From Haliotis rubra (taxonomy: Eukaryota), in assembly GCF_003918875.1 (NCBI RefSeq), contig NW_025766625.1:1178001-1242000 (forward strand): 64,000 bases of DNA, written 5' to 3'. Numbering within the stretch: the stretch's first letter is position 1; each line of letters starts with the position of its first letter. Position numbers and translations under genes: made by a program. This document shows positions 6,269 to 42,919 of the stretch, one piece after another. A model generated the notes under the pieces. The model saw only the letters and a list, made by a program, of their open reading frames with translations. It did not search any database and was not told the DNA's origin.

Positions 6269-7301
6269 AGGATCAGTTCATGCATGACGTGTTATTCAAT
6301 TACACTAAGAGTCTCCTGGGCGTGCAGCAGGCCTTACGCAGTGACTGGGTGCTATTTAATGTCACAAAGGAAGTTCTGCAATACCTAAAATATATCGGTG
6401 GAAACTGAGACGACCGCTTGGTTTTGATCCAGGTAATTCTTAAACATGATACCATTTGTCAACTTCATTCCATATCTATCTTACACATGTTGAACGCGGT
6501 TTGTCTTATTCAGTGAAACCTGTTCAAATGTTTTAGGCCCAGACAAATACCACCCCTTCGTATTTTAAATGACGACACATGTCGTGTAGACGGACCCTGT
6601 ACTGACGCTGATGATTTCTTCGTGCGTTTATCTCAATGGGGATGAGTTCGCTGCAACTGTATCTAGTAAAATGTGCGTTAAGGGCAGCCATCTTTATCTC
6701 CTGATTCATGTCACATTGTGCTTGTATTACCAGGATATCAATGGCATTATTAAACCGAATGAGACGTTAGCGGTACATGATTAGCTGTTGTAGTCCATAT
6801 TATCAGCAACAGTGACTCCTTCCTGTTTACTTATTCTTTGAAATACCCAGCTAAAAATAGTGCACGAAACGTGTGTCGCGTGAACTCATCATCCAATCAG
6901 AAACAGGTAAGGAAACTGAGCGTCATTGTTGAGGGCTATCTCGAGGCGAGGCTATGAGGTACAGGCACTGAACAAATCTATGATAACTTGTGTACTGGTG
7001 GATATTTACTAGAGGTGGATAAGAAATGTTTGTGGAACAAATATTGATTGAGGTAATCACTTGAACGCGCATGGCAGTCTCTGTCCTTTACATTGATTTC
7101 TAGTCATGATCGAGAGGGTAACAGTAGTTGTCTATTTATAGGTCCAGCGTGTCAATAGGTAGGTATGTCCATTGCTGTGCAGACATGTGTGACTCATAGA
7201 CCTAGGCCTGCTTCAGTTATCATCCTACATTAACACTTGTCAGAGGGGTACACAAGATACGTGATGTAGACCACTAGCTGTCCGACTTCCATTTGTGTAA
7301 A

Positions 7302-7639
7302 GGTGAGGTGAAATTGGGTTTAACGTCGTGCTTGAGAATATTTCGCTCATATGACGACGTGCATGCGTGTGTATGTGTATGTGCGGCTGCTTGTACTAGC
7401 CCAGACTTAAGCTGGTTTTATAGTGCTAGCTCACTGAAATACCATGCCGCAGTGAAGCATGAATACCCCACTCAGACACAGTATACTGACTCCGAGCCGA
7501 CCAGTCCTTGCTGTACCCAATAATGCCGAGCGCCAGGCAGGGACCAACAAGTACCATGTTTTAACGTCTTTTGGTATGACGCGGTCGGGTATCGAACCCG
7601 CGACCTTTCGCTCTCCGGGCGGACGCTCTAACCACTACA
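7302..7639 (-). mobile_element. tRNA-derived SINE, Meta-SINE-like
   Basis: Pol III A/B boxes (TAGTGGTTAGAGCG...GGTTCGATACCC) on the - strand and a central domain resembling mollusc Meta-SINEs. 13-bp target duplication CCATTTGTGTAAA at 7289 and 7640. Confidence 0.8.
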
Positions 7640-7946
7640 CCATTTGTGTAAAAGCAGCGGTGGCTGTCTGCTTGTGATTAAGTGCCTGACTCTGACTTTG
7701 CGTTCGAATTCCGGGTGGGACAAGTTGTAAAATATGTACTTTACTGGGACGGTGTAATGCCAAATACGACATATGTTACATTCGGATAGTAGGAACCAGT
7801 AGATTTAACATCCTTGAACACCTTGTATTTGTGGTAATGGTTGTGCTCGTCCTGTATTTCGTTATCAATTATTTGTGGTTTGTGTTCCAGAAGGCATGGA
7901 ATAAACCCACCAATCGGATTTACGCATTATACTAGATCTCACAGCC

Positions 7947-8666
7947 ATGAGAAAACATCAAAGTGTCGTCTTATTGGTGTACAGCGACAAGTTGTACATC
8001 TACTTTCATCTACTATCATATTCTTATGATGTATTGCTGGAAAATGCAGTCCAGCAAAAGGATTTTGTGTTTCGTTATGCCCATATTTGGGTGTACCCGA
8101 CCATTTCTTTGAGAGGTAATTTTGAAGCTCTCATGACTCGGAATGGAGTACCGCTGGAGTACGTCATGGTTTTGAAGCCCGGAGACTGAAGTCATTCCTT
8201 GGTGTGGACATAGCTGTATCCCGGATCGAGCTTGCAAAGGCTGGGTTCTACGCAACAGGAGATGGTGATGAGACTAGATGCTTCAGCTGTGGCGTGAGGT
8301 ACAAGAACTGGAGACAGGGAGAAAGGCCTGACAATGTTATTCATAAGCATAACTGTCGACATAGCCATGGTTTACATCGAGGAAATGTGCCCTTTACCGA
8401 AGACCCACTACCTTTAAGTACTGACATTACTTCGTCACGCCTGTGGTACCCAACATCGGATTACGATCTCCATGATCCACAACCAGAGATCCATTCACCA
8501 TACCTACCTCCTCGTCCAGGGTCTCTAATTTCCTCAGTTCCCGGAACTGATTACCACACACCCGATTACAACCAAGGATCTGATAGACTCGCATCGTTCA
8601 GAGGGTGGCCAAGGGAGAGGGGACCGACTCCGCGTCAACTTGCTGCAGCTGGTTTTTACTATACAG
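7947..8666 (+). CDS. IAP-2 first coding exon (pre-BIR motif, atypical BIR1, first half of BIR2), with a 1-nt frameshift at the T-run 8170..8173
   Basis: ORFs 7947..8189 and 8204..8707 join into ...VMV(F)EARRLKSFLGVDIAVSRIELAKAGFYATG..., matching paralogs IAP-3 and IAP-5. Donor GT at 8667. Confidence 0.85.
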
Positions 8667-8926
8667 GTATTTTTCAAAAAGTGTTTCATGCCTCAGATTG
8701 TTTATAATGACAAACTACAGAAAAATGCTTGATGATAATGTGATATATACAGTGGTAAATTATAACAGCTGTGCAATAAACGTCTGCAAATTTTGAATGA
8801 ATTGTAATTTGGAACTTTCCATAACGTCTTATTTCTTTCCACATGAATACAACTTTACTTAACATCGAAATAGTCCTGTACGTGCAATGTAATTTAAGGT
8901 TTACAATATACCTCATCTACCGGAAT

Positions 8927-9088
8927 GGGGAGGTGGGGAAGCCTAGTGGTTAAAGCGTTCGCTCGTCACATTGTAGACTCGGGTTCGATTCCCCACAAGG
9001 GTACACTGTGTGAAGACCATTTCTGGTGTCCCCCGCCGTGATATTTCTGAAATATTGTTAAATCGGCGTAAAACTAAATTCACACACC
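8927..9088 (+). mobile_element. tRNA-derived SINE family A
   Basis: GCCTAGTGGTTAAAGCG...GGGTTCGATTCCC head and shared body; about 9 copies in the window. Confidence 0.8.
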
Positions 9089-10489
9089 CATCTAGCTGAA
9101 AATTTATCTCTTAGTCCTTTTTTATTTAACTTGTGAAAGGGAACTTCCTTCAATAGTTCCGAATTTTCCTCATCAGTGCACTTAATGAATGTAACTTCTC
9201 AAATAACTTCATTCTTCTATTGAAGATTGTTTTGAAACCATCGATTTCTTGTCCCTGTATTTGCGTAATACGTGTATACTGCTTACTTGTGTTGTTTCAT
9301 TTCTAGCAGCGAGAACTTAGTCCTTCTCACAACAACTAAATTTTGTGTTCCATTTGAATGTCTCTAACTGCTTGTTGTATAATCCGCTCTAATTCTACTT
9401 CATATTTTGATTGTTCTGAGAGTTAAACCTCTGAAATCTTATACCATCTTCTGAATCTGTAATTTTACCATCTCACTTTACATTTCTTCTTAAATTGTAT
9501 TAAACATCAACCTGAGATAAATGTGATTTTTCATTAATAATAATAAATAATAATAATGAATTTTACTAAACATGCAGTCACCACTGTGTAATTTAACCAG
9601 AAACAAAGTTAAGATAACTGGATTATTCCTTTCCTCTTCCAAGTCATAACAGCAAAGATGGGAATTAACCCATTTATGCATAGGGTCTTAGATTTTCATC
9701 AAAATTTGTGAGCTGGCCATGGTTTCTTTTGGCAAGCAATGAAAGGAATGAAGTGTCATTTTACCAGTAAATACATTTTTCCATACTTTGTTACACTGCA
9801 AAAGTGCGTCTCATAAATGGGACAATATGCAGATAATAGTCCAGTAGAATTAGTCTAAAAAATCAGTGAACCTCCCAAAAATTGGTACATAAATGGTTTT
9901 GTGTTTATATCGTTTACAGTAGTATCTGAACATAAGTCCAGAAAATGGTATAAAATCTTGCAAACCATACCACTGAAGTGTACAAAATAGTAAATAATAT
10001 AAATTAAAACTGGAAAACAATTATGACATGAGGTTTGACTTAGATTTTGGACACTCCAGCACACTGGAAACAAGTAAATGAGAGTTATCGCCCCTTTGTT
10101 TACTATAGATGTAGAAGAATGGAAAGGAAAGGTTATATCTTTCATAAAGCTAGATGAGGTTATAGTTAGCCAAATAGATAAAGGGTTAAAAAGACAGCTA
10201 AAAGCTACAATTAGGAGGAGGACTGAGGTGATTCTGCTCCCATAACTAGCCCACAGAACTATATTCACTGCGGTCGTGTAACACTACGAATCTTGGTGAT
10301 AACTGGGACATTCTGTATCAAGATTTAACAGAACTTGAAAAAACATATGCCAGAATGATAGATTAGGAAATATGATACCATTTATATTTTCTATGCTATG
10401 AATTTTAAAACAATTTCAAAAGGTGATTGAAGGATACGTTTGTTCTCTTTTAACTTTAACTGGCAACTACATATTATTATGTGAGCAGA

Positions 10490-10627
10490 GTGAGTGAGTA
10501 TGTTTTTACGCCGCTTTTAGCAATATTCCAGCAGTATCACGACGGGGGACAATAGAAATGGGCTTCACACAATGTGCCCATATGGGGAATCGAACCCGGG
10601 TCTTCGGCATGACCACTAGGCTACCCC
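10490..10627 (-). mobile_element. tRNA-derived SINE family A (partial)
   Basis: Reverse copy flanked by a TGTGAGCAGA duplication. Confidence 0.75.
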
Positions 10628-10798
10628 TGTGAGCAGAATGGAGTAACCGGTAACCCTTGTAAATATTTATAGCATAACTGGTATTTTTTATATCTGACTT
10701 GAAATCTCAGCAACATTTAAAAACGGACTGAAATCTTCGTGAAAAACTTGAAACTGATTCACATACATTAGACATATAACACATATTTTTCTTAAAAC

Positions 10799-11008
10799 TG
10801 GAATATGCCAGCTATGGCGGCGGTCTGTAAATATTCAAGTACGGACCAGACAATCCAGTGATCAACAGCATGAGCATCGATCTACGCAAATGGGATACGA
10901 TGATACGTGTCAACCAAGTCAGCCAGCCTGACCACCCGATCCCATTAGTCGCCTCTTACGACAAGCATGGGTTACTGAAGGTCGATACTAAACTGGATCT
11001 TCATGGGT
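10799..11008 (-). mobile_element. SINE-like interspersed repeat family B
   Basis: Homologous to 42228..42463 and 56114..56337. Confidence 0.7.
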
Positions 11009-12449
11009 GCTGATCAAAGCTCTAGAAAGGTTTTGAAAGCACAAACCAGTATTCTCCTTTTTACTGCTAGTAAACTTTTTTTAAATATTGGTTATTTTTG
11101 AAACTGAAATAACTAATGGACAAATACTTTAAACATTTCAAATACTTAAATTGTTGGTGGTGCATGCTTGTTTATCAGTCATCTTTAACATTTGCTCAGG
11201 AAACGAAAAGACCTCTGACTGACTGAGGGATGACTATATATATATATTCCATGGTATTACATGTCGTTGGGGGTAACTGTCATGAAACCATGTACAATTC
11301 AATGTACCGGTAAGTGAAAATCTATTGCAAGCACCGTTGAATCAAATCACCTCACCCAACCAAGTCTCAAATATTCAAGTTAGTCTGAACACAACCCTTC
11401 AAATTATTGGACTTCTTTTACTCAGAATATCTTCTGTTACTGTTACGTTTTGCTTGGAATTGTCACCAAGCATGATATTCAAAATTAATTCAAATATACA
11501 GACTATGAGACCAAGGGTATCTCTGTCAAGCCCTTGGTGTTCAGGGTCGCCAACGCTATAGTTCAAACCAGCAGATATGATAAATAACATCTTGTTCATT
11601 ATTACAATCTTTAGTTACAGAAGAAGGAGTTAAGTGCAAAGCATCCGAAAATTGGTGTACACGGGGTCAGTTCATTCAGTTTGCAGCAGATAATGTAGAT
11701 TAATCTGAGAACATGGATTAATGCATACCAATGACGTTTTTGCCAATTAGGTGACTGTTTGCCAAAAATGCTGAGGTGTTGATACGCTAAAAGGGATGGG
11801 TTCATATGTCCTGGGTTCATATGTTACGGAGATGCTGAATCAAATTGCTTGATGTCTTGAACAATTCTTGTAGAATATAAAATGAATCACTAGATTGTAT
11901 CATTCTCAGTATTGAGTTATGTTTCATATGAAAGCCAGTTTGGTTGTATTCCATGAAAGCTTTCAAATAAAAAGAGTCAATTTTGAGATTTAAGAGGCTG
12001 ATCTCCCACCACCTAAGCCTAATGTATTACCTAATTTAAGTTCACTTGTCTGCACGGTACTTTGGCGGAAAATAGAGTATGGAAAAAAATGCAAACCATT
12101 TTCATTTTATTTTTCTATTTGAACAACGAAAGTTTTAGACGCATTTTAATGAACTTACATAGTTAAAATAGCACACTTCGCCGAATTGGCAGGGACCTGC
12201 CTTGCCACTGGAAGAGGCCATGCTTAAAGAACTTAAAATCTACAAGTAATATGAATGGTTTAACTACTAACAATTTACTCAGCTTCATTCACGTCTATAC
12301 TGAAAGTTTCTATCTTCATCATAGGAGAGGAATGCTTTTTTGAAGTACCCGTCCCACGACGGATATGCATAAATGGGTTAACCATCGGAACCTTCTACAA
12401 TGTAGTAATGCTCATTCATATTTCTTACGAGTATCTTGGCACATTACAG

Positions 12450-12595
12450 GTTTCCTTGACAAGGTCCGATGCTTCTGCTGTGGAGTTAGGCTGAGGGAAT
12501 GGGATGAAGAAGACGACCCGTGGAGGGAGCATGCTCGCTATAGCCCAAACTGCCGTTTTTTGACAGAAAGATGTCCTACAGATACTACACCACAG
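12450..12595 (+). CDS. IAP-2 exon: second half of BIR2
   Basis: G|FLDKVRCFCCGVRLREWDEEDDPWREHARYSPNC, bounded by AG/GT. Confidence 0.9.
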
Positions 12596-12725
12596 GTAAT
12601 ACTGAGATGCATGTTAAGGAATTACTGAAACCCGAACACCTCTTTTACAAAGCTAGATATGTTGTATAAATATCGAATATTTGTTGAATTATTTTCTTTC
12701 CAATAATATCAAAATCTATGTTTAG

Positions 12726-13245
12726 GTTACTGGATCAGGTTCCAGCGAGATTCATCCTCAAAGAGCAGCTATGAAGCGCAAAAATGAATCCCAGGATAAC
12801 AGACAGTGGAATCGGTGCATACTATGTCTGGATCACCCTGCCAACATAGTATTCCTCCCATGTGGGCATCTGGTAGTTTGTGTCATGTGCAAACAAGTTA
12901 TACAACGTTGCCCAGTTTGCAGCATCCGTATCCGGGGATGTGTTCGCATCTATCCAATGAGTCATCAAAGTTCAAGACACCCGTCCTCGGATCAAAGTTC
13001 AAGACACCCGTCCTCGGATTTCACTCTTCGTGATCCGTCGCCAGAGATCCCTCCGACATCCATAATACCTCCAGATCACCGTCCTACATCTATAATGTCG
13101 TCAGCTTCTAAACCAGAGACTGGAACGAATTACTACGCACCTGATTACCACCTTGAAACTGATAGACTGTCGTCGTTCCAAGGCTGGCCGAGCGAGAGGA
13201 CTCCGACACCGCAGCAACTTGCTATTGCTGGTTTTTACTATACAG
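12726..13245 (+). CDS. IAP-2 exon: internal C3HC4 RING, linker, first half of BIR3
   Basis: CILCLDHPANIVFLPCGHLVVCVMCKQVIQRCPVC runs without a stop into DRLSSFQGWP...LAIAGFYYTG; AG/GT bounded and in phase. Confidence 0.85.
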
Positions 13246-13918
13246 GTACTGTTAAACACGTGTTTAATGTCTTTCACTGTTCAAAATACCAAGCCACAAT
13301 AGTGTACATTTTCAATAGGAAAACTTGTTTTGTAGAATGCTAAGTTCTAAGGATGCGCAAAGAAAGTCTAACAATACTACATGTACAGTGATTTTTTTAG
13401 TATCTGTATAAAAAGTTGCTCGATCGGAATTAATGTCACCTTGAAAGGTATTGGGGTTTCATGAGGATGCATCGTGTTGCTATGGGAGAAACTATGAAAG
13501 TTACACAGATCTTAGGCATTTTCGTGTGACATTTTCAGAAACTTTTCAATATCAAAATGTGATGACATCTATCGTCCAAATGCCATTATAGTGTTTAGTC
13601 TTCTCACTTCTACATTATTACTGTATTACTTATTCTTTATTGGTTTAACTGTAGTGAAAAGTTTAACTTTGTCGAAGAGCTGTGAATCGTAGAAGAGATA
13701 GGATAATCATATTAATGATCTTCAGAAACAAGGCATGACATTAAATATAATTACCAATCAGAAACGCATACAACTCTAAGATGCAACTTATATTGTCTTA
13801 AACGGTGTCCCCATTGTCCCAAAACATGATGAATTAACCATGATAACATTCTACAATGTTGTAATGCTCATTCATATTTGTTCTTAATATCTTGGCACAT
13901 TGACATACCTCCCCGCAG

Positions 13919-14064
13919 GTTTCCTGGACAAGGTCCGATGCTTTTGCTGTGGAGTTAGGCTGAGGAAATTGGATGAAGAAGACGATCCGTGGCGGGAACA
14001 TACTCGCTTTAGCCCAAACTGCCGTTTTTTGGCAGAAAGATCTCCTGCAGATACTACACCACAG
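13919..14064 (+). CDS. IAP-2 exon: second half of BIR3
   Basis: Near-identical paralog of exon 12450..12595. Confidence 0.9.
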
Positions 14065-14190
14065 GTAATACCAACATTCATTCATGTTCATGCAACCCAA
14101 AGAAATCTTTTTCATAAAGCTGTATATGTTATTAAACAGTAAATGTTTGTTGAATACTACTTTTACAAACTCCTCAAAATGTATCTGTAG

Positions 14191-14217
14191 GTTACCGGTT
14201 CAAGTTCCAACGAGATG
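14191..14217 (+). CDS. IAP-2 last exon, 5' part (VTGSSSNEM), interrupted by the LTR element
   Basis: Acceptor at 14190; homologous to the start of exon 12726 (VTGSGSSEI); continues at 23109. Confidence 0.85.
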
Positions 14218-14539
14218 TGTCGTAACTGGCGTTTGGGTGTTAGTAAACCCTACCACCGTTACCTATTAATTATGGTCGTTCCACATTGTTCGGGGAGATG
14301 GTAGCTCTGGCGCTCCACTCGCTTGGTCCGTTGCAGGACGCTAAGTCAAGGAGTGAGGGTTCTGACGACCGTGACTCCTAATTAACCACATAACATTCAT
14401 GTACTGGCACACATACATTCAAAGATAAACGCAACACCAAGTTTATACTCACATAGTTTTTTGAGCAAAACTGCAAATCTAAATACAAATCTGATGTAAT
14501 TCTCTCACGGTTTTGGGGATGCATTTTTACCTTATAACA
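14218..14539 (-). repeat. 3' LTR (322 bp, lacking 420 bp present in the 5' LTR)
   Basis: Matches 22363..22606 joined to 23027..23104, with about 5 substitutions counted by eye. Confidence 0.92.
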
Positions 14540-14548
14540 TCCTCCGCC
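14540..14548 (-). promoter_or_regulatory. Polypurine tract GGCGGAGGA
   Basis: Purine-rich run immediately 5' of the 3' LTR on the - strand. Confidence 0.7.
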
Positions 14549-16580
14549 TGTGGACAAGAGCTGCCCACAGCTCGGATACATTAAACATGAGCACAGGTCC
14601 GATATGTTAAAGTTAAACACATTGAACACCGTCGAAGCAAAACAGGATCGGTAATTTCTGAGAGGAAATGATAACCCATTTCAAACTTTCGGAATATTCG
14701 GAAAAAGTCGAGGATACTGTACCTTAAAAACGAGCATGCCAAGGAATAAGAGAATGATCCTATGTTACTTCGGGTAACCACAAAGCATATACATCATATA
14801 TATTATGAGATGAAAACACAACAATGAATTAAAGTCAATATTAAATGTGAAAATGTCTTCAATATGGCCAAACAATGGCACCACCATTCACAAAAGTTCA
14901 TAAGTCTCTGGTCCCATCGAATAAACTGGCAAACGTCTACTGGAAAAGTCATGTTCTGAATGTCACTTGATATACACTGAACGCTGTTTACTCTGTGCGA
15001 GGCCACAACAAAATTAATGTCTGAACACAGGGCCGTGTATCACACAGCATAGTTAATTGGCTTGGTCTTCAAAGTGAGGAGACGAAATGTTCTGCACACT
15101 GCGTGAGTGAGCTCTGTAGTTTCACTGATGATGTACCCTGTTGCTTTCGCAACTTGTAGGGGGGCATCGTAGAGGTCTTGCAGTGTCTATCGTCAATACT
15201 GCGCCTTCGTGGGCGGTGTTCAGCGTCGCAACCTGGAACTTGCGATAGCGTTCGCCGGTAACAGCAAGTGTGGAGCCAGATAATCGATGTGGCGTGGACC
15301 AGACGACAGCGAGGGAGGAGCTTATCTGTTCTCCCGTCTGAATGGGGTCCGGCCATTAATCTACAACACTTGAAACAAGTGTTAAACCACGGCGAATATA
15401 ATTAGTATTATAATATACATTAGATACGACAGCAATACATGTTAAAACATGACACGCTCAAATAAATGGCAACCTGTGTACAGGTCACAGTAGACAATTA
15501 CAGCATTCTTGACTGCCGACTGCGTGCCGAATAACAATTTGAGTCCATAATGTTGCATGAATATTCTCTGATACCTATGTAGCATGGCATCAATAAATAG
15601 TAATCAAATGTTATTTTAACCATGGACGACATCTGTAATACCTGTAATAGGTTAAATAGGTGCAAGTTACTCACAACATTCAGTAAATGCTTTGCAGTTT
15701 AAAACAACAAGAACGAACAACACCGATAAATAAGGGATGGACTGAAAGTATACATTGAAACACGGATAAGAATATTTCCTAACAAGTAACATTGAAGAGA
15801 ATCCACAGTAGAATTATGTAATATAAATAACTTCCATCTATCCGTAATGTATGAGACATCAATTCCTAATACAGGTATTGTCTCTATAGAAAAGTTATAC
15901 AATATTGTCGTAAGAATGAGTATTAATATATGACTGAACATTCTCTTTGTGACTTTGTAATTATATAGGGGTTAAGAGCACGATGATCTCTACTGTTAAA
16001 ACATTTAACAAAATATTACTATAACTTTAAAACATGGAGTATTTATCGAAAACTATCGCTTTTCCAATTCTTAACCATTGTGTAGACTCAAATGGTCAAT
16101 GTACCCAAATGACAAGTGTTCTAACACTGAAAAATGACTGGTCGTTAAAAGTTTGTTGAACTCCATTATCAAGATTACGTGCTGATTTCGTCCTCTGCAC
16201 AATGCGTTTCCACGGTGACAGTCCACCATAAGATAACGGTTGAATTCGTCATCGACATAAATACACTTTGCTGCGACCGTTATATCTGGCATTTGGCGGA
16301 GAACAAAAGCTTTCTATTGCTAATAGGATAACCGGGGTCTGCCGTCTGATTTAAGGGGACGGTTGTAATGCCATAATGTTATAAAACCATAAAAACACTT
16401 GCTATAGTTGGAAGGAATTGTTTGAATTGAAACGTTTTTCCAGACATATATATATATATATATAGATGGGGTTTGAATTACCAAAATTGGGGCTATCGAA
16501 CAGTAAATAATATGTAAAGAAAACTCGTTGAATACGAAAGTTAGTCAAAAATTTGCAGCTGACAACGTGAGGTCACGGGT

Positions 16581-18704
16581 TCAGAGATAAAATTGTGGCA
16601 GAACAATCTCATGACAAGAATTCGTCAAATGTAAAACTAAGGTCGTAACCGGTCGATTGAACTTTTTTACTCTGCGAAGAAGTAAAATAAACACCAGAAA
16701 TACTGTCGATATGATGAGGAAAACATCCATTGAAATAGTTGATTTAATCAAAGACATAAAAGATGGCTGGGGATAGTTCGGAGGGGTGGTTGTGTGGTAT
16801 GCTTTCCAATCTATCAAACCATTAGTCGGGGAACCTGCTGTAAGTAACGTTAAAGCAAAAAATAGGCGTCTAACTTTTAACCATAAATACATAACCAGTA
16901 TAAATAGAAATAAGGACAAACCTGCGGCAAAACTAGCCGTTAAATGTTAGGGCTTGGTTAAGGACCCATCCAAAGCAGACGATGGAAGGGAATTCATCCA
17001 ATTATCTTCAATTAAATTATCCGAAATCACTTGTGCCTTTTTCATACGCTTGGAAATAAGGCGTAAATCAACTTGAAATTTATTTTCCTTTTTCCGAATG
17101 TCATCGAAAACTTTATAATCGATTAATAAATGTGGAATTTTGAACGCAGAATCTTCTAAAAGAAGCCGTAAAGTTTCGTAAGGTTTCAGTACGGATGAAT
17201 TGAAAAATTCCGATAAGAGTAGAAGATTGGGTGGATACAATTTTGAAGTTGTTGACTTTTTTTCACAGTGATGAATTCTCATGTCTATGTCGAATTCATC
17301 CAGTTTCAACGCACAGTGGCAAGGAATTTTAAATATACAAATCTGACAAGCTGGACGCTTCTCAATGCGACCCTTGCAAGTTAATATAATAGTTTTTATG
17401 CCACTGAGCAAAACAAGGCCTGGTTCGATTTCGAGAGCCATCGAACGAAGCCCTTTTAATCTAAATTTAACATCACACAAGGATTTAATTCCTGGTGCGT
17501 CCTGATCAAGCAGAGCAAGTGCGCAGGTGAGAACCAGTGTTTGGTTTGGCGCTAAGAAAAATTGGGCAATGTTTTTTGTGTTCACCAAAACATGTTTGAA
17601 AATCCCTGGTAGAAAATTCAATATACTGATCTTTCGCTTCCGAAACTGCCAAATAATCAGGTAAATTCATAACCTGAGTGACGTGTGAACTTGATTGATT
17701 AATTGGTAGGCCAAATGAATTGATTCGATATACCTCGAGGAGAGTTGAATGAGTCTGGAAAGGAACAATGAGTGAAATTAAAATTGAATCTCCAGTTCTA
17801 GAACAATGAACAGTGCGTTCCCGATAATAATAGCCTGGATCCTTGTGAGCAACGTGAAACAACGGATATTCTGCGTTTAGACGTTTTTGAATCATATTTA
17901 GGGCCTTCTTTACTTCCGTAACTGGGAGCAAAGATGGACTCAAACGTTGGTTAACTAATTGCTGTATTCCAAGATACATTTCATCAATTTCCTGTCGAAT
18001 AGTCGTCAAAAATGTCAGACGATCTAGCAAAATTTTCATAGAAATGAAAATACTTTTTTCTACGTCTTGTACCTGTTCGGCGACCTGAGAAATGTCCCTA
18101 TGATTCGTTTCAATACCTGTTAGAGAGGAAGAAATACGGTCATTGGTTTTAGCTATAAATGACGACATCTGACGAACTTGCACTTGTACAACGCGAGAAG
18201 TATTAGTTACATGCATTGATAATCGTTTGACATACTGCGCCAGCCGTTCTACATCTTCGACTGTAGCAGTACCAAAAATTGAACGACTAATGGATCCGAT
18301 AAATGGAAGGATTGCCCGTCTCGTGCGTGAATCCTTTTGAAAAGTGTTAACATGCGGAATTAATATTTTAATGTCCTTACTGACATTCGTCCAATACACG
18401 AGCAATTCTTGTTCCGCTTTCTTTATATATCCATCTATAGCATTCACAGAATAACAATGTAACGCGTGCGTTTTACAAAACTGTTGGTAATCTGGTCTAT
18501 TACCCATTTCAGACAAATCTGGCAATTTATACTTGAATACATGGATCCATTTATTTTGTGAAATGTCGATACGTGACGTATGGATAAATACAACTCCCCA
18601 TGGAAGTCGTAATTCTGTATGGACAGAATTAACTTGATTCTGGATGATGACAAGCGCCATCAGCGTGAACAAGACCCAAACTGGTCGAAGGAGACTCCTG
18701 GATT
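16581..18704 (-). pseudogene. env: env: class I viral fusion glycoprotein (gypsy-Env/baculovirus-F-like); frameshift near 17530 and an in-frame TAA at 16947..16949 before the TM segment
   Basis: Signal-peptide-like SRSLLRPVWVLFTLMALVIIQ, furin site RTRR followed by fusion peptide AILPFIGSISRSIFGTAT, heptad repeat, QRLSPSLL motif, Cys-rich region, TM GLSLFLFILVMYLWL and a second TM VFLIISTVFLVFILLL. Confidence 0.85.
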
Positions 18705-19830
18705 CTAAAATTCAAAGAACGGGATTATGAACATAAAATAGAAACTTGAAATGAAATCATATACGTCATCAATATTCTTAGGAAAAGTTTCCATCACTGT
18801 AAAACTGCATTCATATGACGTCTTCTCCTGTCAATTGAAACTGACTGTATTAAACATATGATAACAATTGTCACATGCAGGTAATGGTAGTTTCACACTA
18901 GTATTCGTGCGAATAAACAACATTCAACAATAGTAGTAAATTCTCATCAACCTGTTTCATCAGAAGATTTCTCACCACGGAACATATATGTATTGGTACG
19001 GTATAACCATTGAACACTGAATTCTCTTGACTTCCTTTCGAGTCATGTAACTGTAATTCATTGTTCGTCATCGTATTTCATTGAATACCATTGTATTTGT
19101 ATATATATCGTATCATCATCGTCAGATCTCTTTGGATCGTAGTTCATTTCTTTTTCTCGTATATACACGCATAGCGAAACGCTTTGTAATGGTCCGCGAA
19201 TATGTACAACGTCCCTTTTGGACAGCGCGACCTGTAACCTTCCCGTAGAAGTAGTATGAATATGCATAACCTGACCCAAACATTTTGGTCAGTAACCCGG
19301 GAATGTATTCTTCAAGTAGTAATACGAAATGTGACCCAAACCTTTGCAGCGTTTGGTCACTAACCCGTGAATATGAATATATTTTTCAATATCAACCAAC
19401 ACGTGACTGTATGCAGTTGAAGTATTCTGAATATATTCAACAAGACATTTGACAAGAAACAATACACAGTTCAACATATATGCACACTTCTATTTCCTTG
19501 TAACCTGGTGACAATTGCATCATGTAACATCGTAAAGGATGATCTATAGCGTGGGCTAGCACCATGCGTATAGCATCATATAGTGATAATCCTGAAATAA
19601 AACACATGCAAAAATCAATTTGTGGGTGATCAGTCCTCAGCATGATATTTGCAGTGTCGTAACTAAAAAGGTAACGCTTTATAACAATTTGTCAGAAACA
19701 ATATTTCAAATATTTTGTTAAAAATTCTAACGCTTTCGTTTCTCATTTAACGACTGCAGTATCATATAATCATAGGTCTCCTTCAGGGATTTTGGATTCG
19801 TGATTATCTGTAACCACATGTAAAGTGCAG

Positions 19831-21063
19831 TTACCTCATGTAAAGTGCAGTTCTCCTAGTAAATCCTGTAGTATTTCTTTCCACTGAGTATTCTACGCTC
19901 GCATCCATTTTGCTATACAAAGTATTCCTGTATATCCAAGGTGACTTTTTATGCCTGTCCGATGTTAACGGCTTGGAAATGGGGGTTATGATGTCTGTAT
20001 CCGTACCAGATTTATGCAATTTATTAATTTGATTGTAATGACCGACAACTGGAAATGGGTTAGTTGGCCTGTGTCTGTGGTTGACAAACCGCCTAAGCCG
20101 TTTAGCATGACCAGGAACTTTCAGTCGTTTACGATTGTCATAACGTGGTCGTTTGCACGTACACGGTGGCAATTGATTGGACGCGTCATATTGTCTGTGT
20201 GATGTGGAGTAATCTCCTGTCGGGACAGCGGTTACTCTAAGTGAGCTGTCATCATACAAATCTGATGACAAATCTGTTGTGATTGGAATCGATATTTGGT
20301 TGTTGTTATCCGACTGGGGAAGACCACTGTCTGAATTCGGTGAACATTCTGAATACGGAAAGCTTGACAGAATCTCTGTGGGATGCCAGTGTTTGCCCGG
20401 TCGATACTGAACTGTAAAACCTAGGCAGTGTTCCTTTTTTGATGGGGGAGCAATTGTGACATTTTGCCGCGAGCAAGCAGGAATGTGTTCTGACTCCGTG
20501 GGGATTGATTGTTTACCAGCAACAGGTGGTAATAAAGTACCATTCGCCCTCATTGGAACAACTGTTGAACCATTCTGAATAGCCAAAGTATAAGATTGAA
20601 AATTCATGACAGTCTTTTGACTTATCAAGAAATCTAATCCTAAAATCATGGGAGACTCAAAATTTGCAACAACTAGAAAACATTGTTCTGTTTGAAAATC
20701 ACCAATAGTGATGGAAAGTACAACTTGTCCTAATACTGGCATTATATTTTGACTTATCCCTTGAATAGATGGCACATCTGACTTTTCAATAGGGATTTTT
20801 TTCCATAGGCCTGAATCATTGAAAACTTCTAGGCTTAAAACACTAGAACCAGCGCCTGAATCTACAATTGTTGGAACTAACTTTTCTCCCAAAACAACAT
20901 GAATTGTATTAAGCCTGTTGTCGCTTTCAAATGTAGTCTGCGAAAAGTTAGATTTTGGCTGGTTGTAACGAGGAGAATTACAAGCTTGTGGTTTCAAATA
21001 AGTATGGTCAACCGTTTGTTCAGCACAATGGGAAAATTTCCTGCGTGGTCTTGACTGTAATTG
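19831..21063 (-). CDS. pro: Retropepsin (aspartic protease) ORF in frame with gag; remnant pol with RNase H and integrase C-terminal stubs only
   Basis: IVDSGAGSSVL active site and ILGLDFL motif, FTVQYRPGK (RNase H end), VPGHAKRLRRF (integrase C-terminus). No YxDD or DDE core. Confidence 0.85.
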   Translation of the reverse strand, partial: QLQSRPRRKFSHCAEQTVDHTYLKPQACNSPRYNQPKSNFSQTTFESDNRLNTIHVVLGEKLVPTIVDSGAGSSVLSLEVFNDSGLWKKIPIEKSDVPSIQGISQNIMPVLGQVVLSITIGDFQTEQCFLVVANFESPMILGLDFLISQKTVMNFQSYTLAIQNGSTVVPMRANGTLLPPVAGKQSIPTESEHIPACSRQNVTIAPPSKKEHCLGFTVQYRPGKHWHPTEILSSFPYSECSPNSDSGLPQSDNNNQISIPITTDLSSDLYDDSSLRVTAVPTGDYSTSHRQYDASNQLPPCTCKRPRYDNRKRLKVPGHAKRLRRFVNHRHRPTNPFPVVGHYNQINKLHKSGTDTDIITPISKPLTSDRHKKSPWIYRNTLYSKMDASVEYSVERNTTGFTRRTALYMR

Positions 21064-22185
21064 CTATCTGCTAGTTCGGTAACCTGACTGGTACCTAGCC
21101 CTGCATACTCGTTGAAAATGTCCTATCTTGTGACAAAAATGGCTCTGAATATTCCGTGCGGGACAAAAATCAGAATGAGAAAAATCGTACTCACCACCGC
21201 ATCTGTAACACTGCCTTCCACGGGCCATGTTGTCTCCTTGAATGGGGTCTGTCCATTGAGGAGTGGGCTGCCACGGTTGATCTGTATACCTGGATTGTCT
21301 GGGGAACTGGGGACGTTGATTCTGTCGGGACTCATAAGTATTGATCTGTGACGATACCGGAGCGAGTTTTGCCGAAAGTTCAACAATCTGTAATCTCAGC
21401 GTATCTATTGCTAGCATAACGTTTGTACTGTCTTCAGACTGGGGAATGACCGATCTAGCCAGTCGCGCAAATGAAACTGCCTCGTTTAGCACATTTGGTT
21501 GTTTCATTAACACATGTCGCCTGGTATTGTCATCCAGTCCCCTAACGAAGGCGTCCATTACATCTGCATCTGTTTTTCCTAACAGGCTAGCCGTCTCAGT
21601 CAAGTCCGCCAAATAAGTATCTATAGATTCTGTAGAGGATAGCTTTCGACTGACAAAAGTTTCCAAAAGGGCCCAACGGTCAGTAGGATGGACATACTTG
21701 TCCTTGAACAATTTCTCAATCTCATCAAAACGGACTATTTCTTCCTCTGCCGATTCTATCAAATCTTTGTACCATAGATACGCCGCGTCCTTTAAAAACA
21801 GTGGGAAAACTTCAATTTTCTGTGCATCAGTCCACCTTTTAAAGTTATCAAAATGAGCAAAACGGTCAAGCCACTCGGCAGAATGAAACGTGTCCCTACC
21901 TGTGAAATGTTCTGGCATTAAAGTGGAATCGCCCATATTGAAGTCAGGTGCAGAATAAGAACTATTGGTAGATGACAAATCTAAAGAGGAAAATGAGAAT
22001 TCTAAATCCTCCTGAGAAAGAGATAGGGAGAGGTCATTGGGAGCAGATGGAGGTTGAGACGTTGACGTGGGTTGTTGTATTATGCCAAGTCGGGTTGGAT
22101 TAGTAAAAATGTTAGAAGTGATGGGACGAGATTGGACCAGACTGTCATAGGACGTAGATGAATCTGAATCATTTCCACGAGGCAT
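21064..22185 (-). CDS. gag: Gag (retrotransposon capsid domain plus Zn knuckles)
   Basis: PEHFTG...WLDRF...FPLFLKDAAYLWY capsid motif, FVRGL, and CYRCG..H...C plus a degenerate SHFCHKIGHFQRVC knuckle. Confidence 0.92.
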   Translation of the reverse strand: MPRGNDSDSSTSYDSLVQSRPITSNIFTNPTRLGIIQQPTSTSQPPSAPNDLSLSLSQEDLEFSFSSLDLSSTNSSYSAPDFNMGDSTLMPEHFTGRDTFHSAEWLDRFAHFDNFKRWTDAQKIEVFPLFLKDAAYLWYKDLIESAEEEIVRFDEIEKLFKDKYVHPTDRWALLETFVSRKLSSTESIDTYLADLTETASLLGKTDADVMDAFVRGLDDNTRRHVLMKQPNVLNEAVSFARLARSVIPQSEDSTNVMLAIDTLRLQIVELSAKLAPVSSQINTYESRQNQRPQFPRQSRYTDQPWQPTPQWTDPIQGDNMARGRQCYRCGGEYDFSHSDFCPARNIQSHFCHKIGHFQRVCRARYQSGYRTSR

Positions 22186-22346
22186 TACAAAAATTCAAAA
22201 TATCCTGAGGGAAAACTGCAGATAACATATCCCAGCCGCGAAAAGGGAACCTACCGTCAAACGTCAATGCAAGGGAACAAAAGGGTAGGAACGACCATAA
22301 GGAAAACAGCGAAATGGATCGTCTTAAACATTTTGTTCAAGAAGAA

Positions 22347-22362
22347 CCCGCAGACTCCACCA
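22347..22362 (-). promoter_or_regulatory. Primer binding site TGGTGGAGTCTGCGGG (tRNA-Ala-like)
   Basis: Starts with TGG directly after the 5' LTR and resembles the complement of the eukaryotic tRNA-Ala 3' end. Confidence 0.7.
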
Positions 22363-23104
22363 TGTCGTAACTGGCGTTTGGGTGTTAGTAAACCCTACCA
22401 CCGTTACCTATTAATTATGGTCGTTTCACATTGTTCGGGGAGATGGTAGCTCTGGCGCTCCACTCGCTTGGTCCGTTGCAGGACGCTAAGTCAAGGAGTG
22501 AGGGTTCTGACGACCGTGACTCCTAATTAACCACATAACATTCATGTACTGGCACACATACATTCAAAGATAAACGCAACCCCAAGTTTACACTCACATA
22601 GTTTTTACTCAGTCTCAGTCCATCTCTCTAACTACAACTTCAACATCAGACAAGGCAGGTTCGTACCACACGGGGCAACTGAGTGGCGTGAACTGGCTTC
22701 CGTCACTAAAAAGCGCGCACCACTCGCTCAGTGCCCAACCTGTCTTTTTATATGGTTCGAGCCTGGCCTGATCTTGATCACATGTTTGAACTAATCATTT
22801 TGATTCGGTTAGCCTGTATCCGACCTTGCACTCATGAATATTACGATTGGAAAAGTACCGGTAAGAATCGTTCGGTTACTCATCCCTTTGTTGTTTGTTT
22901 CAATGTAAGATTAATCTGTTATGTCTTTCAACAGAATGTGTTCTGTCTCTCTTTCCATAGCCTACGGCTAAACGCCATTCTATGGAAACTTTCCGTCTCC
23001 ATACCGTGCCTAACCGTTATGACTCATGAGCAAAACTGCAAATCTAAATACGAATCTGATGTAATTCTCTCACGGTTTGGGGGATGCATTTTTACCTTAT
23101 AACA
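22363..23104 (-). repeat. 5' LTR (742 bp) with TATAAAAA at 22752..22745
   Basis: TGTTATAAG...TTACGACA on the - strand, homologous to the 3' LTR. Confidence 0.92.
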
Positions 23105-23105
23105 G

Positions 23106-23351
23106 ATGCAACCTCAAAGAGCAACTACGAAACGCGACGAAGAAATCCATGGCAGAAGAGAGTCCAGATTGTGTAAGATCTGTCTGGAGGACCCCGCCAA
23201 CATCGTCTTCCTCCCCTGTGGACACCTGGTTGCCTGTGCCTTGTGTGCCCCAGCTCTGGAGCGTTGTCCAATCTGCAGAAAACACATCCAGGGAACTGCC
23301 CGTGCCTGTAAAGCCGATATGGCGTCTCGACAGAAACGTACTAACTGTTAA
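23106..23351 (+). CDS. IAP-2 last exon, 3' part: C-terminal C3HC4 RING separated by the LTR insertion
   Basis: CKICLEDPANIVFLPCGHLVACALCAPALERCPIC; joins 14191..14217 in frame when the element and one TSD are removed. Confidence 0.9.
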   Translation: MQPQRATTKRDEEIHGRRESRLCKICLEDPANIVFLPCGHLVACALCAPALERCPICRKHIQGTARACKADMASRQKRTNC

Positions 23352-23789
23352 TAACTGACACTGTAACTGAGAGTCCTCATGTCATAGAGCATAAATAACA
23401 TTCGAATCTTGCTTTTTGTCAAAATTAAGATGACAAAATATGCCATCGTAGCCGTAGGAATTATTTCAGATATCGTTATTAACAGTGCCCAACCTCCACA
23501 AACAAACGTGTTTTTACAGCGAGAAGCAACCTCTTTCCATTTCTATTCTTAAATCTGGTCCAATAAGTTTTAGACTCGACGAGAGAAGGGCTTGAGAATT
23601 GTTAAAATAACGAAAATATGTCACAATGAATAACGCGACATATATCGATGTTTTAGAAAGGGCGGCAACTTCACAAGTTACACTCTAGGATTCGATACTG
23701 AAGTGATAGAAGACAATCAGTTAAATGACAACGCTTTTTAATTCACATTGTTGTTATAATTGCAAAACAATTCTACACACTGAATGGTA

Positions 23790-28026: not shown

Positions 28027-29488
28027 ATGAGGATAAAAAGTCATACACTTATGTATATTTATATCCGATGCCTTTATGTAATACCACCAAAAAGCAAATA
28101 TGTTTTTGAGTTGAAGTATGGAAATATTATCACCAAAAAAGTCGGTGGTGGACACTTGCCCGACATTGTTGTTAATATCACCTGTTTTGATAAGCTCTCA
28201 AGTTATTTTACAAAATCACATAAAAATATGGCGTTTCCGATGTTTTATATGCCGGAGCTAAGAGCGTTCCAGCACATTAGTATCGTGGTATATACAAACC
28301 CATCGATATCACTAAATGGGAATTTTGAAGCTCTGGTTGCTAGACGTGGCGCCACCCTGCAGGAAATCATGGTTTATGAAGCTCTTAGATTGAAATCCTT
28401 CCTTGGAGTAGACACAGCAACTGTATCCACTATACATCTGGCGGCAGCAGGGTTCTATGCAACAGAGCGTTCAGGAGAGATCAGGTGCTTCAGCTGTGGC
28501 ATCCGCCAAAGGATAGGACCACAGGCCCCAGAACGTCACCAAACTGATTGTCGACACAGAAATGGGTTACCTTGTGGAAATATCACCTTTGCTGATTGTC
28601 CCTTGGCTTCTGAGTGGAATATTATTCGAAACCTTCCCAGATACCCGACCACAGATATCGATCTTCATCAACCACAGATGCGACCAACCGCAAGGCAACT
28701 ACCTGGAAACGTCGCTAACAATGCATATGAACCCCGTCAGGCTAACCACGCAGTGCCTGATTACCCTATAGAAGCTAGTCCGGCAGCGCTCGGAGTAAGG
28801 TTGAGAGAGGGACGCCAGGCTCCGCAAAAGACCCCTGGAGAAGATCCTAAACGAGAAGGTACAGTTTGTACGTGGTCGTTATAATCCGATGTAAGACTTA
28901 TTTTATGTGAATGTGTTGGATAAACATTTTTTTCGAGTCTTTTTCGAGCGAAAATGAACAAAACATAAGAAATATATGTGGCGATATTTTGGAGGTAAAA
29001 CACAACTGTGACACCTTTAATAATAATGTGTGAATCCACCCTGTTGCAGGCTCCCCCGGCTTCGTTGGGCCCCGCGAGTTGGATGAAGATCAAGGCAGAT
29101 TGTTTAGAGATATTAACAGGGGATATAATTTCCCCGTCGGCGACAGATCTGGCACTTTCACCTCCTTACAGGTAACATGAATTTAGCTGAATGAAATCGT
29201 ACTGATTGTAACACATTCACATGAGACGTTTGGGTATAAAGCTAACTATACTATTTTTCTGGAAATTGTATTTTGCAGGTGACGCAGCTGGGTAACACCC
29301 CAGAGGCTTTCGGCAATGCTTTTAGTGGACATGGACTGGAACACCCGCAGTTTATGGAATCGAGCTTGTGCAGGATCTGTCGGGAGAACCCCCGCAGTAT
29401 CCACTTCCACCCCTGCGGTCATCTAGTGGCCGGTACCTTCAGAACACCTTCAGAACGTTGCCCAGTTTGCAGGCAACATTTGGCATAA
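28027..29488 (+). CDS. IAP-3: divergent IAP (atypical BIR1, degenerate BIR2, degenerate RING). Exons 28027..28858, 29050..29171, 29279..29488
   Basis: RLKSF...LAAAGFYATE...CFSC; same exon phases as IAP-2; RING CRIC...PCGHLVAGTFRTPSERCPVC lacks one Cys pair. Confidence 0.8.
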
Positions 29489-41297: not shown

Positions 41298-42919
41298 TCA
41301 GCCTGCACTGCCAGAACTGTGTCGTTTTCGCAGGGACGTCACTTCCTGAAAGATGGACACAATGACTTCATTGCACTATGGATGATCCCCAGTTATGACT
41401 TTTAATACGCAGTTTTGTTTACAAATACAATATTCATAAATTCATTCCCCAGGAATTAGAGTGAAGTGTTCATCTTATGTAATCGTCACATGTACATGTA
41501 ATGCACAGTCAATAGGCGATACACCGTGGAAACATAGTCACACAAGTGGAAAACGAAAGGTTTGAGACGAGAGAGATATATCAATTCACGGAAATCATGG
41601 GGGAAGGGGTGGGTGGGTATTAGGCAAGGAAGGGTGGGTTGGGGATACGCTGGTGCCGCTACATGACATAAAACCCAATAGCATTCTTATAGCCAGCATG
41701 AATAAAATGGTCTGTTATACTGGGTCTTATATTTTCGTTCAAGTAGGTTTTATATCGTGCAATAGTGTCTCATGTCTTTAGAGATTTAGTTATCAATTAT
41801 TAGTTAAAACTAGTTAAAAAGTTTCTTTCTGTCAAATTACGTATGTGTTTTATGCCCAAGGATTTATTGGATTGCAACATGTTGTTTATTTGTAGGCACG
41901 AAGATAATTGTTAATATACTGTCGACAACCAAATTACACGATCAAAGCCTTACTAGACTAGATAGTTCAGGATAAAGAAGCACTAATTCAGATAAAGATA
42001 CACTAATTCAGATACAAGACATAAGAATGTGAGCATGAACTAACCCCTGCTTTGTCCAAACTGCAACCTCTTGTCAGTAAAGGACACTTGGAGTTGAGTT
42101 CGGCGTGGCGCTTCCAGGGACAGTCACCCTCAACCCAGTCATGAAGAATGTTACCACAATGGGCGCATATAAGTGTGTTCCCCTGGCCTGTACACAAAAG
42201 CTAATAGATAGCATTTATATCGTGACTCGACCAGTGAAGATCCAGGTTGGCATTGGTCTTTAGCAACCCATGATTGTCGTAAGAGACGACTAATGGGATC
42301 GGGTTGTCAGGCTCGCTGACTTGGTTGACAAATGTTACCGTATCCCAATTACGTAGATCGGTGTTGATCACTGGATTTTCTGGTCCAGACTCTACTATTT
42401 ACCGACCGGCGCAATATAGATGTAATATTGCTTAGTGCGGTGTTAAACAACAAACCAACAACAACATTCATGACAAAAGATTACATATAAACATATAAAA
42501 AACATATAAACTATTTTAAGAATCACAAGCGTGTTCTTTCTATGAGAGCTCAACGAGCGTCTTAGAGTTATAACGTTACAAGACTTAGCAGTGCTTTCAA
42601 AAATGTATTTACCTGAGTAAAAGAATCCGGCATTTGCCATATCCTTAAGCTGGATCTCCGAGACCCCCTGTAGCAGTGATGATGCTATGTCCTTTAGGGT
42701 CTTCAGGCGTTTCTCGAAGTTCCACATCTGGATGTGACACATGTGCTTGCCAGGACTGGTGGTTCTGATTCTGGTAAGCGCCTCTAGAGTAAGAGGTTGT
42801 GGCTCGCGCGGTGCTCGTGCTAGATGAGCATGTATATTTACTCGCCAATTGACCAGCGCACGAGGTATACAGACCAGCTCGTCGTCCAGGAAGTGTCTGT
42901 ATTTATTACTGCTGTCCAT
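41298..42919 (-). CDS. IAP-4: single-BIR protein. Exons 42919..42613, 42187..42045, probable 41345..41298
   Basis: KRLKTL...MANAGFFYSG|QGNTLICAHC-x16-H-x6-C with GT-AG junctions; the last exon is uncertain. Confidence 0.75.
42228..42463 (+). mobile_element. SINE-like repeat family B in an IAP-4 intron
   Basis: Homologous to the 10799 and 56114 copies; 3' tail similar to family A. Confidence 0.7.

Follow-up and report, generated by a model that had tools for sequence, protein, structure and literature searches.

Locus organization and gene models

The window analyzed here, a 64,000-nt stretch of the Haliotis rubra genome (contig NW_025766625.1), contains LOC124279784, an IAP gene that sits inside a cluster of tandem IAP paralogues in which both strands are represented. 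Its coding unit comprises five exons on the plus strand, with canonical AG/GT borders at every exon. Exon 1 (about 8130..8666) encodes a degenerate BIR domain (BIR*), a linker (YPTSDYDLHDPQPEI...) and the first half of BIR2, and although BIR* is degenerate the exon as a whole still matches the Pfam BIR family (E 4e-17). Exon 2 (12450..12595), which encodes the second half of BIR2 (Pfam BIR E 6e-15) and has RNA joints on both sides, is followed by a fusion exon (12726..13245; exon A hereafter) and by an exon for the second half of BIR3 (13919..14064; Pfam BIR E 7e-13). The last coding exon encodes RING2 and is present in two pieces on the plus strand, a start of 27 nt (14191..14217, VTGSSSNEM) and a remainder (23105..23351), on either side of a minus-strand LTR retrotransposon (14218..23104) that does not belong to the IAP itself. 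An IAP family member is expected to have at least one BIR domain with the C-x2-C-x16-H-x6-C zinc site, and BIR2 and BIR3 both match Pfam PF00653 and the pattern C..C..W..H..C.

The 5' end of the gene is less clear. The RefSeq model of this locus takes its start codon from a mini-exon, ATGAG followed by gt (6954..6958, plus strand), which lies 1.2 kb upstream and, joined to 8130, yields the model start MSSHDSEW; the reality of this mini-exon is uncertain. Alignment with H. asinina and H. cracherodii shows a 1-nt deletion near 8171, in a T-run 13 codons past an ancestral, conserved ATG (8133-8135), and this deletion puts the ATG out of the BIR* frame. The deletion could be a real lesion that reflects decay of the gene or a homopolymer error of the draft assembly.

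In an exhaustive protein search, residues 231-403 of one 842-aa protein (P0001) were the sole match that covered positions 12726-13245 fully. This protein is XP_046571620.1, 'uncharacterized protein LOC124279784 [Haliotis rubra]', predicted on scaffold QXJH01000256.1 of the scaffold-level draft assembly GCA_003918875.1. It matches the exons analyzed here exactly up to the end of BIR3, then omits the interrupted RING2 exon and continues into the downstream IAP gene, which has a RING-like motif at 29369-29470. XP_046571620.1 (window positions 6954-29490) is a chimera of LOC124279784, through BIR3, and the next IAP gene, apparently because the retrotransposon interrupts the real last exon of the former.

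A single exon joins a RING domain to a BIR domain

Exon A is located on the plus strand between an AG and a GT border, is open throughout its 173-aa translation and ends at a phase 1 donor. It encodes a pre-RING helix, RING1, an IAP-type tail (VRIYPMS) with no stop codon after it, a copy of the linker and the initial half of BIR3. In Pfam the translation matches zf-C3HC4_3 over residues 29-70 (E 3.6e-11) and, over residues 147-173, the first half of the BIR domain. Two homologies meet within the exon. Residues 8-98 match the RING2 exon (tblastn E 8e-19, with a DNA alignment also made), and residues 94-173 match exon 1 at 8447-8665 with 55% identity (tblastn E 1e-21), the matching segments starting HPSSDFTLRDPSPEI in exon A and YPTSDYDLHDPQPEI in exon 1 and the exon-1 homology beginning at HPSSDFTL.... 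At the junction between the two lies a perfect tandem duplication of 27 nt (12964..13017, plus strand) that encodes QSSRHPSSD twice, reported by Tandem Repeats Finder as 12964-13019 with a period of 27, 2.1 copies and a 100% match. A first-pass annotation of this DNA had described a first RING that lacks a stop codon and runs through this duplication into a copy of the BIR linker, and the open frame, the repeat and the exon-1 homology all agree with that description. RING1 is an internal domain, the chain continuing for >230 residues beyond it.

The same annotation had stated that the two RINGs have diverged while keeping all eight zinc ligands, which the motif pattern C-x2-C...C-x-H...C-x2-C...C-x2-C bears out at 12816-12920 for RING1 (8/8) and at 23172-23276 for RING2 (8/8). 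Its further statement that duplicated BIR and RING exons follow holds for the BIR exon, which is 90-92% identical to its counterpart in exon 2, and applies to the RING exon with the qualification that the assembly shows it split by the LTR element.

Transcription across the fusion exon

Four runs (X1-X4) from one 2017 study supplied transcript evidence; the contigs carry GT..AG joints and therefore derive from RNA. The joints 8661->12445, 12593->12724, 13242->13916 and 14062->14189 equal the exon borders after correction for the cut offset. The 696-nt record 20 of X3 comprises 12445-12593 joined to 12724-13242 and then to 28 nt of the next exon, and contig X4-27 joins 12986-13242 to 13916-14064. 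Contigs of all four runs cross positions 12950-13050 with no reported insertion or deletion, so the 27-nt duplication is present in the RNA, and in each of these runs the transcripts enter exon A at the 12726 acceptor and continue through RING1. In transcription and splicing exon A behaves as an ordinary internal coding exon. These contigs are uninformative on transcript ends and on isoform proportions.

The RNA bears directly on whether the exon is genuine. It has been proposed as a caution that transcripts might break between RING1 and BIR3, or that the junction might be misassembled; contigs from four runs instead span RING1, the duplication, the linker and the first half of BIR3 and then splice onward. 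Since spliced contigs span the whole of exon A, the exon is neither a misassembly nor the product of two merged genes. A spurious continuity of RING1 and BIR3, caused by misassembly or by the collapse of two genes, might have been suspected from the draft, scaffold-level state of GCA_003918875.1 and from a RefSeq model that visibly runs into the next IAP gene, but it is effectively refuted by independent RNA contigs from four samples that are collinear over the junction, duplication included, and by the independent, chromosome-level assembly of H. asinina, in which the junction is of the identical RING-to-linker type.

An A/T polymorphism at 12952, seen in contigs of X3 and X4, changes Tyr to Phe at the position equivalent to F616 of cIAP1, where active dimeric RINGs have one or the other of these residues. 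Other non-synonymous variants in the RNA are located at 12813 (R>G), 12836 (H>Q) and 12997 (S>N). Record 11 of X2 has an unusual structure in which the end of exon A (13240) is joined to sequence like the second half of BIR2 (12445) and not to the second half of BIR3. This join could represent a converted haplotype, a back-splice (a circular RNA of exon 2 and exon A) or an extra repeat unit.

A retrotransposon divides the RING2 exon of the reference allele

The last coding exon is interrupted by an 8.9-kb LTR retrotransposon inserted antisense to the IAP gene. The 27-nt start of the exon ends at the insertion point, and the remainder carries the RING2 ligands, an ARAC tail with a 13-residue extension and a TAA stop codon at 23349-23351; it matches zf-C3HC4_3 (E 1.4e-16) and the RING of cIAP2 (E 1.5e-17). 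The element is delimited by LTRs at 14218-14539 and 22363-23104 and by the target site duplication GATG, and its gag is on the minus strand, where a Ty3_capsid/PEG10 gene call was also obtained. Its two LTRs differ by 5 mismatches in 322 nt, the right LTR carrying in addition a 420-nt insert (22607-23026), and the element is lacking from the orthologous site in H. asinina. The insertion is young. Read straight through, the reference allele meets a stop codon 28 codons into the LTR and so encodes a protein without RING2.

The RNA contigs appear to come from a different allele. Record 7 of X1 (409 nt) and record 14 of X2 (243 nt) both pass from 14062 to 14189-14217 and then diverge exactly at the LTR edge; the stretch used for comparison reached 82 nt into the LTR, beyond the point at which these contigs cease to match. 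In X1 the depth of that bin is fully explained by the 29 nt from 14189 to 14217. About 297 nt of the X1 record remain after the divergence, and by length these would fit positions 23109-23405, namely what is left of the RING2 coding sequence with 54 nt of UTR, to a point about 10 nt past ATAAATAA. We also considered that the element might be spliced out after the 27-nt piece, and rejected this: 14218 has no GT, and use of the neighboring GTs (14217/18 and 14219/20) with the AG at 23104/05 would shift the frame. Because such a splice lacks a usable in-frame GT, the contigs that contain 14191-14217 are better explained by an allele free of the insertion, and we regard it as highly probable that the animals sampled for RNA carry or express such an allele. 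A splice from 14064 directly to 23106 would keep the frame.

One frame over five exons encodes both RINGs in H. rubra, once the insertion is removed, and in H. asinina, and the RNA reaches the first 27 nt of the RING2 exon. From the length and position of the contig remainder, RING2 is likely to be present on the mRNA that bears RING1. Database searches for H. rubra proteins that join BIR3 to RING2 returned none; among Logan and other transcript-derived proteins, a word search with the RING2 exon gave only three unrelated ENA proteins (60-64% identity), and a protein search with exon A restricted to 95-303 aa returned nothing. The architecture BIR*-BIR-RING-BIR-RING, which the first-pass annotation had ascribed to intragenic duplication, is upheld in its layout, its origin and, through the RNA and H. 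asinina, the continuity of RING1 with BIR3, whereas the evidence that places RING2 on the RING1 mRNA is indirect and the exon concerned is split in the reference.

Conservation in abalones and origin of the duplication

The locus in H. asinina (L001; protein P0002, XP_067674759.1) is syntenic with that of H. rubra, with neighbors that are alike on both sides. Positions 13170-13662 of L001 are the orthologue of exon A, an intact frame of 164 codons with 69% amino-acid identity, 8/8 RING1 ligands and an identical RING-to-linker junction, and are followed by the exon for the rest of BIR3 and by a RING2 exon that is not interrupted. The recommendation that the architecture be sought in related genomes is thereby answered by an intact fused exon in a second abalone. 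H. asinina has a single QSSRxPSSD unit and so lacks the 27-nt duplication. Its RefSeq model, XP_067674759.1, skips RING1 through an internal acceptor (...ADTSPQ joined to TGTNYHAPDY), which reads cAG| in H. asinina and gAG|, a poor acceptor, in H. rubra. Neither the H. rubra nor the H. asinina RefSeq model displays the full BIR*-BIR2-RING1-BIR3-RING2 architecture: the former merges two genes because of the retrotransposon and the latter skips RING1.

Comparison of the two repeat units dates the duplication relative to the two species. Between H. rubra and H. asinina, orthologous segments share 81-87% identity, as opposed to 52-73% for the paralogous segments of the linker with the first BIR half, the RING and the introns. 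With paralogue identity so far below orthologue identity, the duplication must long predate the divergence of H. rubra and H. asinina, and the sequences describe an old intragenic duplication whose frame has been kept open in two species. The second-half BIR exons depart from this pattern. Within H. rubra the exon at 12450-12595 and that at 13919-14064 are 91.8% identical, and each is only about 86% identical to its H. asinina orthologue, while the other duplicated segments are far more diverged; this difference points to probable gene conversion between the repeat units at these exons.

A single event would suffice to produce this arrangement. A tandem duplication extending from the exon-1 linker to a point just past the RING tail, before the stop codon, would have created one fusion exon in which RING1 reads into a second linker-BIR-RING, giving BIR*-BIR2-RING1-BIR3-RING2. 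An alternative is that a deletion fused a pair of complete IAP paralogues standing in tandem, eliminating the stop codon and 3' end of the first gene together with the promoter, BIR* and part of the linker of the second. The setting of the gene among tandem IAP paralogues on both strands is congenial to such a deletion, as is the published reading of the BIR-RING-BIR-RING proteins of Apis as gene fusions (PMC13159474). It needs two events, however, and the second unit starts exactly within the linker with no trace of BIR* or of a 5' exon; the introns that flank the second-half BIR exons are homologous between the two units, and the syntenic locus of H. cracherodii (L002) has a single second-half BIR unit. 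We therefore consider fusion by deletion very unlikely and retain intragenic duplication as the origin of exon A.

The H. cracherodii locus was considered as a third orthologue of the fusion exon and rejected, as there is no RING1-BIR3 unit there. Its predicted protein (P0003, RefSeq 'baculoviral IAP repeat-containing protein 7-B-like') resembles that of H. rubra in its neighborhood, its BIR*-BIR2 N-terminus and its two predicted RINGs, and differs in having the order BIR*-BIR-RING-linker-RING with no BIR3, an order known from the gene model alone. At L002:6001-10017 the prediction reads BIR*-BIR-RING-130 aa-RING, and the start of the RING exon is duplicated (~8420-8500 and ~8715). As modeled, this layout may be a second, independent duplication or rearrangement of the RING at the syntenic locus.

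Selective constraint on RING1

Substitution rates vary along the coding unit. Between H. rubra and H. asinina, dN/dS is 0.22-0.31 for BIR*, the first linker and BIR2, 0.34 for RING2, 0.48 for BIR3, 0.59 for RING1 (49 codons) and 0.86 for the second linker. RING1 is thus weakly constrained by this measure, and substitutions alone are no proof of selection on it. A simulation of the chance that exon A would remain free of stop codons was likewise not significant (P 0.21 and 0.10), and for this reason constraint was assessed from insertions and deletions. The three flanking introns have accumulated 17 indels in 857 aligned nt at 82% identity, as opposed to one in-frame indel in the 493 nt of exon A, a deficit whose P(<=1) is 6e-4 over the exon as a whole and 0.006 over the 366-nt part, RING1 and linker, that is intron in the H. 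asinina model. At the level of sequence comparison, the indels do indicate constraint on exon A. RING1 still matches the RINGs of cIAP2 and cIAP1 at E 1e-12, and the indel deficit, the age of the duplication and the fact that the RING is still recognizable together argue that for most of its history RING1 was a translated sequence.

These results have to be weighed against the view that RING1 is a tolerated relic, either spliced out to leave a BIR*-BIR-BIR-RING protein or carried as an inert spacer, in an H. rubra gene that is drifting toward a pseudogene. Several features are compatible with such decay: the H. asinina RefSeq model skips RING1, dN/dS is raised in RING1 and the second linker, the linchpin Arg of the RING is replaced by Ser in both species, the groove Trp of BIR3 is lost in both (L in H. 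rubra; V, with PW->PR, in H. asinina), and the H. rubra reference allele carries both the LTR insertion in its last exon and the 1-nt deletion after the ancestral ATG. Against it, all four RNA runs enter exon A at 12726 and read through RING1, the internal site that would exclude RING1 is a poor acceptor in H. rubra, the 122 codons that would then be intronic contain no frameshifting indel where about 7 are expected (P 0.006), and 8/8 ligands have been kept even though the duplication far predates the species split. We judge a relic to be rather unlikely on this balance. The frame of exon A has been kept intact in the two species alike, H. rubra and H. asinina, and translation of RING1 as an internal domain is therefore most likely.

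Arrangement of the two RINGs and a proposed role for RING1

The RINGs of IAPs act as dimers, with the interface and a trans-acting tail at the very C-terminal end (PMC7290580). In cIAP1 the linchpin R606 and the tail residues R614 and F616 stabilize E2~Ub in its closed conformation, and related dimeric RINGs carry Phe or Tyr where cIAP1 has F616 (PMC6349121). Both abalone RINGs belong to the IAP subtype (PF13920; RING1 E 3.6e-11, RING2 E 1.4e-16), their best solved relatives being the cIAP2 and cIAP1 RINGs, on which the residues were mapped by alignment, those of H. asinina being transferred from the H. rubra/H. asinina alignment. In H. rubra, RING1 has Ser at the linchpin (CPVCS) and a tail reading R-I-Y, or F at the last position in the X3/X4 allele at 12952, whereas RING2 has the linchpin Arg (CPICR) and a tail reading R-A-C followed by the 13-residue extension. 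In H. asinina, RING1 has Ser at the linchpin with a tail of R-V-H, and RING2 has Leu (CPVCL) with a tail of R-V-Y. The complementarity of linchpin and aromatic residue seen in H. rubra is consequently not conserved in H. asinina. Neither RING forms the very C-terminal end of the protein: RING1 is internal and RING2 has 14 residues past the aromatic position, as it likewise does in H. asinina, in comparison to solved IAP chains that stop 2 residues after the tail Phe.

The two RINGs are separated by ~165 residues, comprising two low-complexity linkers and BIR3, a spacing that would be ample for intramolecular pairing. We propose that RING1 may serve mainly as a dimerization partner or tail donor for RING2, within one chain or between chains, and not as an autonomous E3 module. 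The explanation as a whole, in which an old intragenic duplication would have given rise to an internal RING1 with a partner or tail-donor role in a gene whose reference haplotype has since had its RING2 exon split by an LTR insertion, is in our view probable.

A more specific form of this proposal is suggested by the residues of H. rubra, where a predicted RING1:RING2 pair would hold exactly one complete catalytic arrangement, though we put this forward as a low-probability idea. The protein would then be a natural, single-chain, asymmetric RING heterodimer in which RING2, with its linchpin kept and its aromatic residue lost, binds and primes E2~Ub and RING1, with its linchpin lost and its Arg-x-Tyr/Phe tail kept, provides the trans-acting tail. 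We consider this division of labor improbable. If true, it would constitute a constitutively dimeric IAP E3 whose activity is independent of concentration or of ligand-induced dimerization, a natural counterpart of the engineered RNF4 2xRING with a division of labor like that of MDM2-MDMX.

Comparison with known IAPs and RING fusions

The abalone gene joins a kind of IAP that is known and has so far only been predicted. IAPs with the order BIR(s)-RING(s)-BIR(s)-RING(s) have been predicted in molluscs and insects, for example in Apis dorsata, A. florea and A. laboriosa (PMC13159474, Mol Biol Evol 2026), by authors who flag such predictions as possible annotation artefacts. The abalone gene shares with them the domain order and its reading as BIR-RING units that were fused or duplicated, in lineages whose IAP families have expanded. 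It differs in the nature of the evidence, since those proteins are described at the level of a catalogue and the abalone join of RING to BIR lies within one exon, is present in spliced RNA from several animals and occurs in two species, which is unusually direct support. The aphid proteins Ap-IAP-A1 to A4, with the order BIR-BIR-RING-RING, were reported as unique; they are functional, and in a fly-eye assay their anti-apoptotic effect was the strongest (PMC7768685, PNAS 2020). There too the two RINGs stem from an intra-gene domain duplication; the aphid RINGs, however, are adjacent at the C-terminus, the abalone RINGs are split by the linker, BIR3 and the pre-RING segment, and the origins are independent. 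Given these publications, the novelty that the first-pass annotation implied for a two-RING IAP was overstated. Papers on oyster and hard-clam IAPs make no mention of two-RING or RING-BIR architectures (PMC8917759, PMC7831173). Our protein search also returned further database models in which an internal RING is followed by a BIR (P0099, P0004-6, P0009, P0013, P0123 and P0152), any of which may be merged tandem genes.

Relative to the canonical cIAP1/cIAP2, XIAP, BIRC7 and DIAP1 (PDB 3eb5, 6hpr, 4auq), the abalone protein has the same BIR C2HC and RING C3HC4 folds, and the alignment extends over the whole RING, including the IKGTVRTF-type tail. The canonical chain ends 2 residues after the tail Phe, in contrast to the >230 residues that follow RING1 and the 14 that follow RING2, and it retains the linchpin Arg that RING1 lacks and the tail aromatic residue that RING2 lacks. 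A precedent for a RING with no free C-terminus is provided by engineered fusions of two RNF4 RINGs, which are constitutively dimeric and hyperactive (PMC7332993, and Plechanovova et al. cited there). These fusions show that a first RING that lacks a free C-terminus can still function in a single-chain dimer. The RNF4 constructs place two dimerizing RINGs in one chain, the first with no free C-terminus, an arrangement predicted for the abalone protein too. The constructs are artificial, with identical RINGs and a one-glycine linker, whereas the abalone case occurs in nature and has RINGs that have diverged, with a long, BIR-containing linker between them.

The latest metazoan survey of IAPs left it open whether the BIR-RING-BIR-RING order is real or an artefact, and the abalone locus offers a clean positive case. 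On the usual view an IAP RING requires a tail that ends freely at the C-terminus, a rule for which a mid-protein RING with its tail motif retained provides a natural test; the protein may also be a natural single-chain RING dimer. The reference allele, with its insertion, encodes a form devoid of RING2, and if the uninterrupted allele exists in the population a direct comparison of alleles would be possible.

The surrounding IAP cluster and intronic repeats

The gene order of the tandem IAP cluster is common to H. rubra, H. asinina and H. cracherodii. In the H. rubra window, BIR and RING motifs of neighboring IAP paralogues were found on the minus strand at 1575-1667, 42084-42167 and 51003-51131. 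Intron 1 contains short interspersed repeats at 8900-9100 and 10300-11100, where the summed depth of RNA contigs rises to ~59,000 and many chimeric joints occur. The consensus of the loose ends at these repeats includes a tRNA-like GGTTCAATTCC box, which suggests that they are SINEs, and a tRNA-like stretch that resembles them is also present at ~7600-7720.
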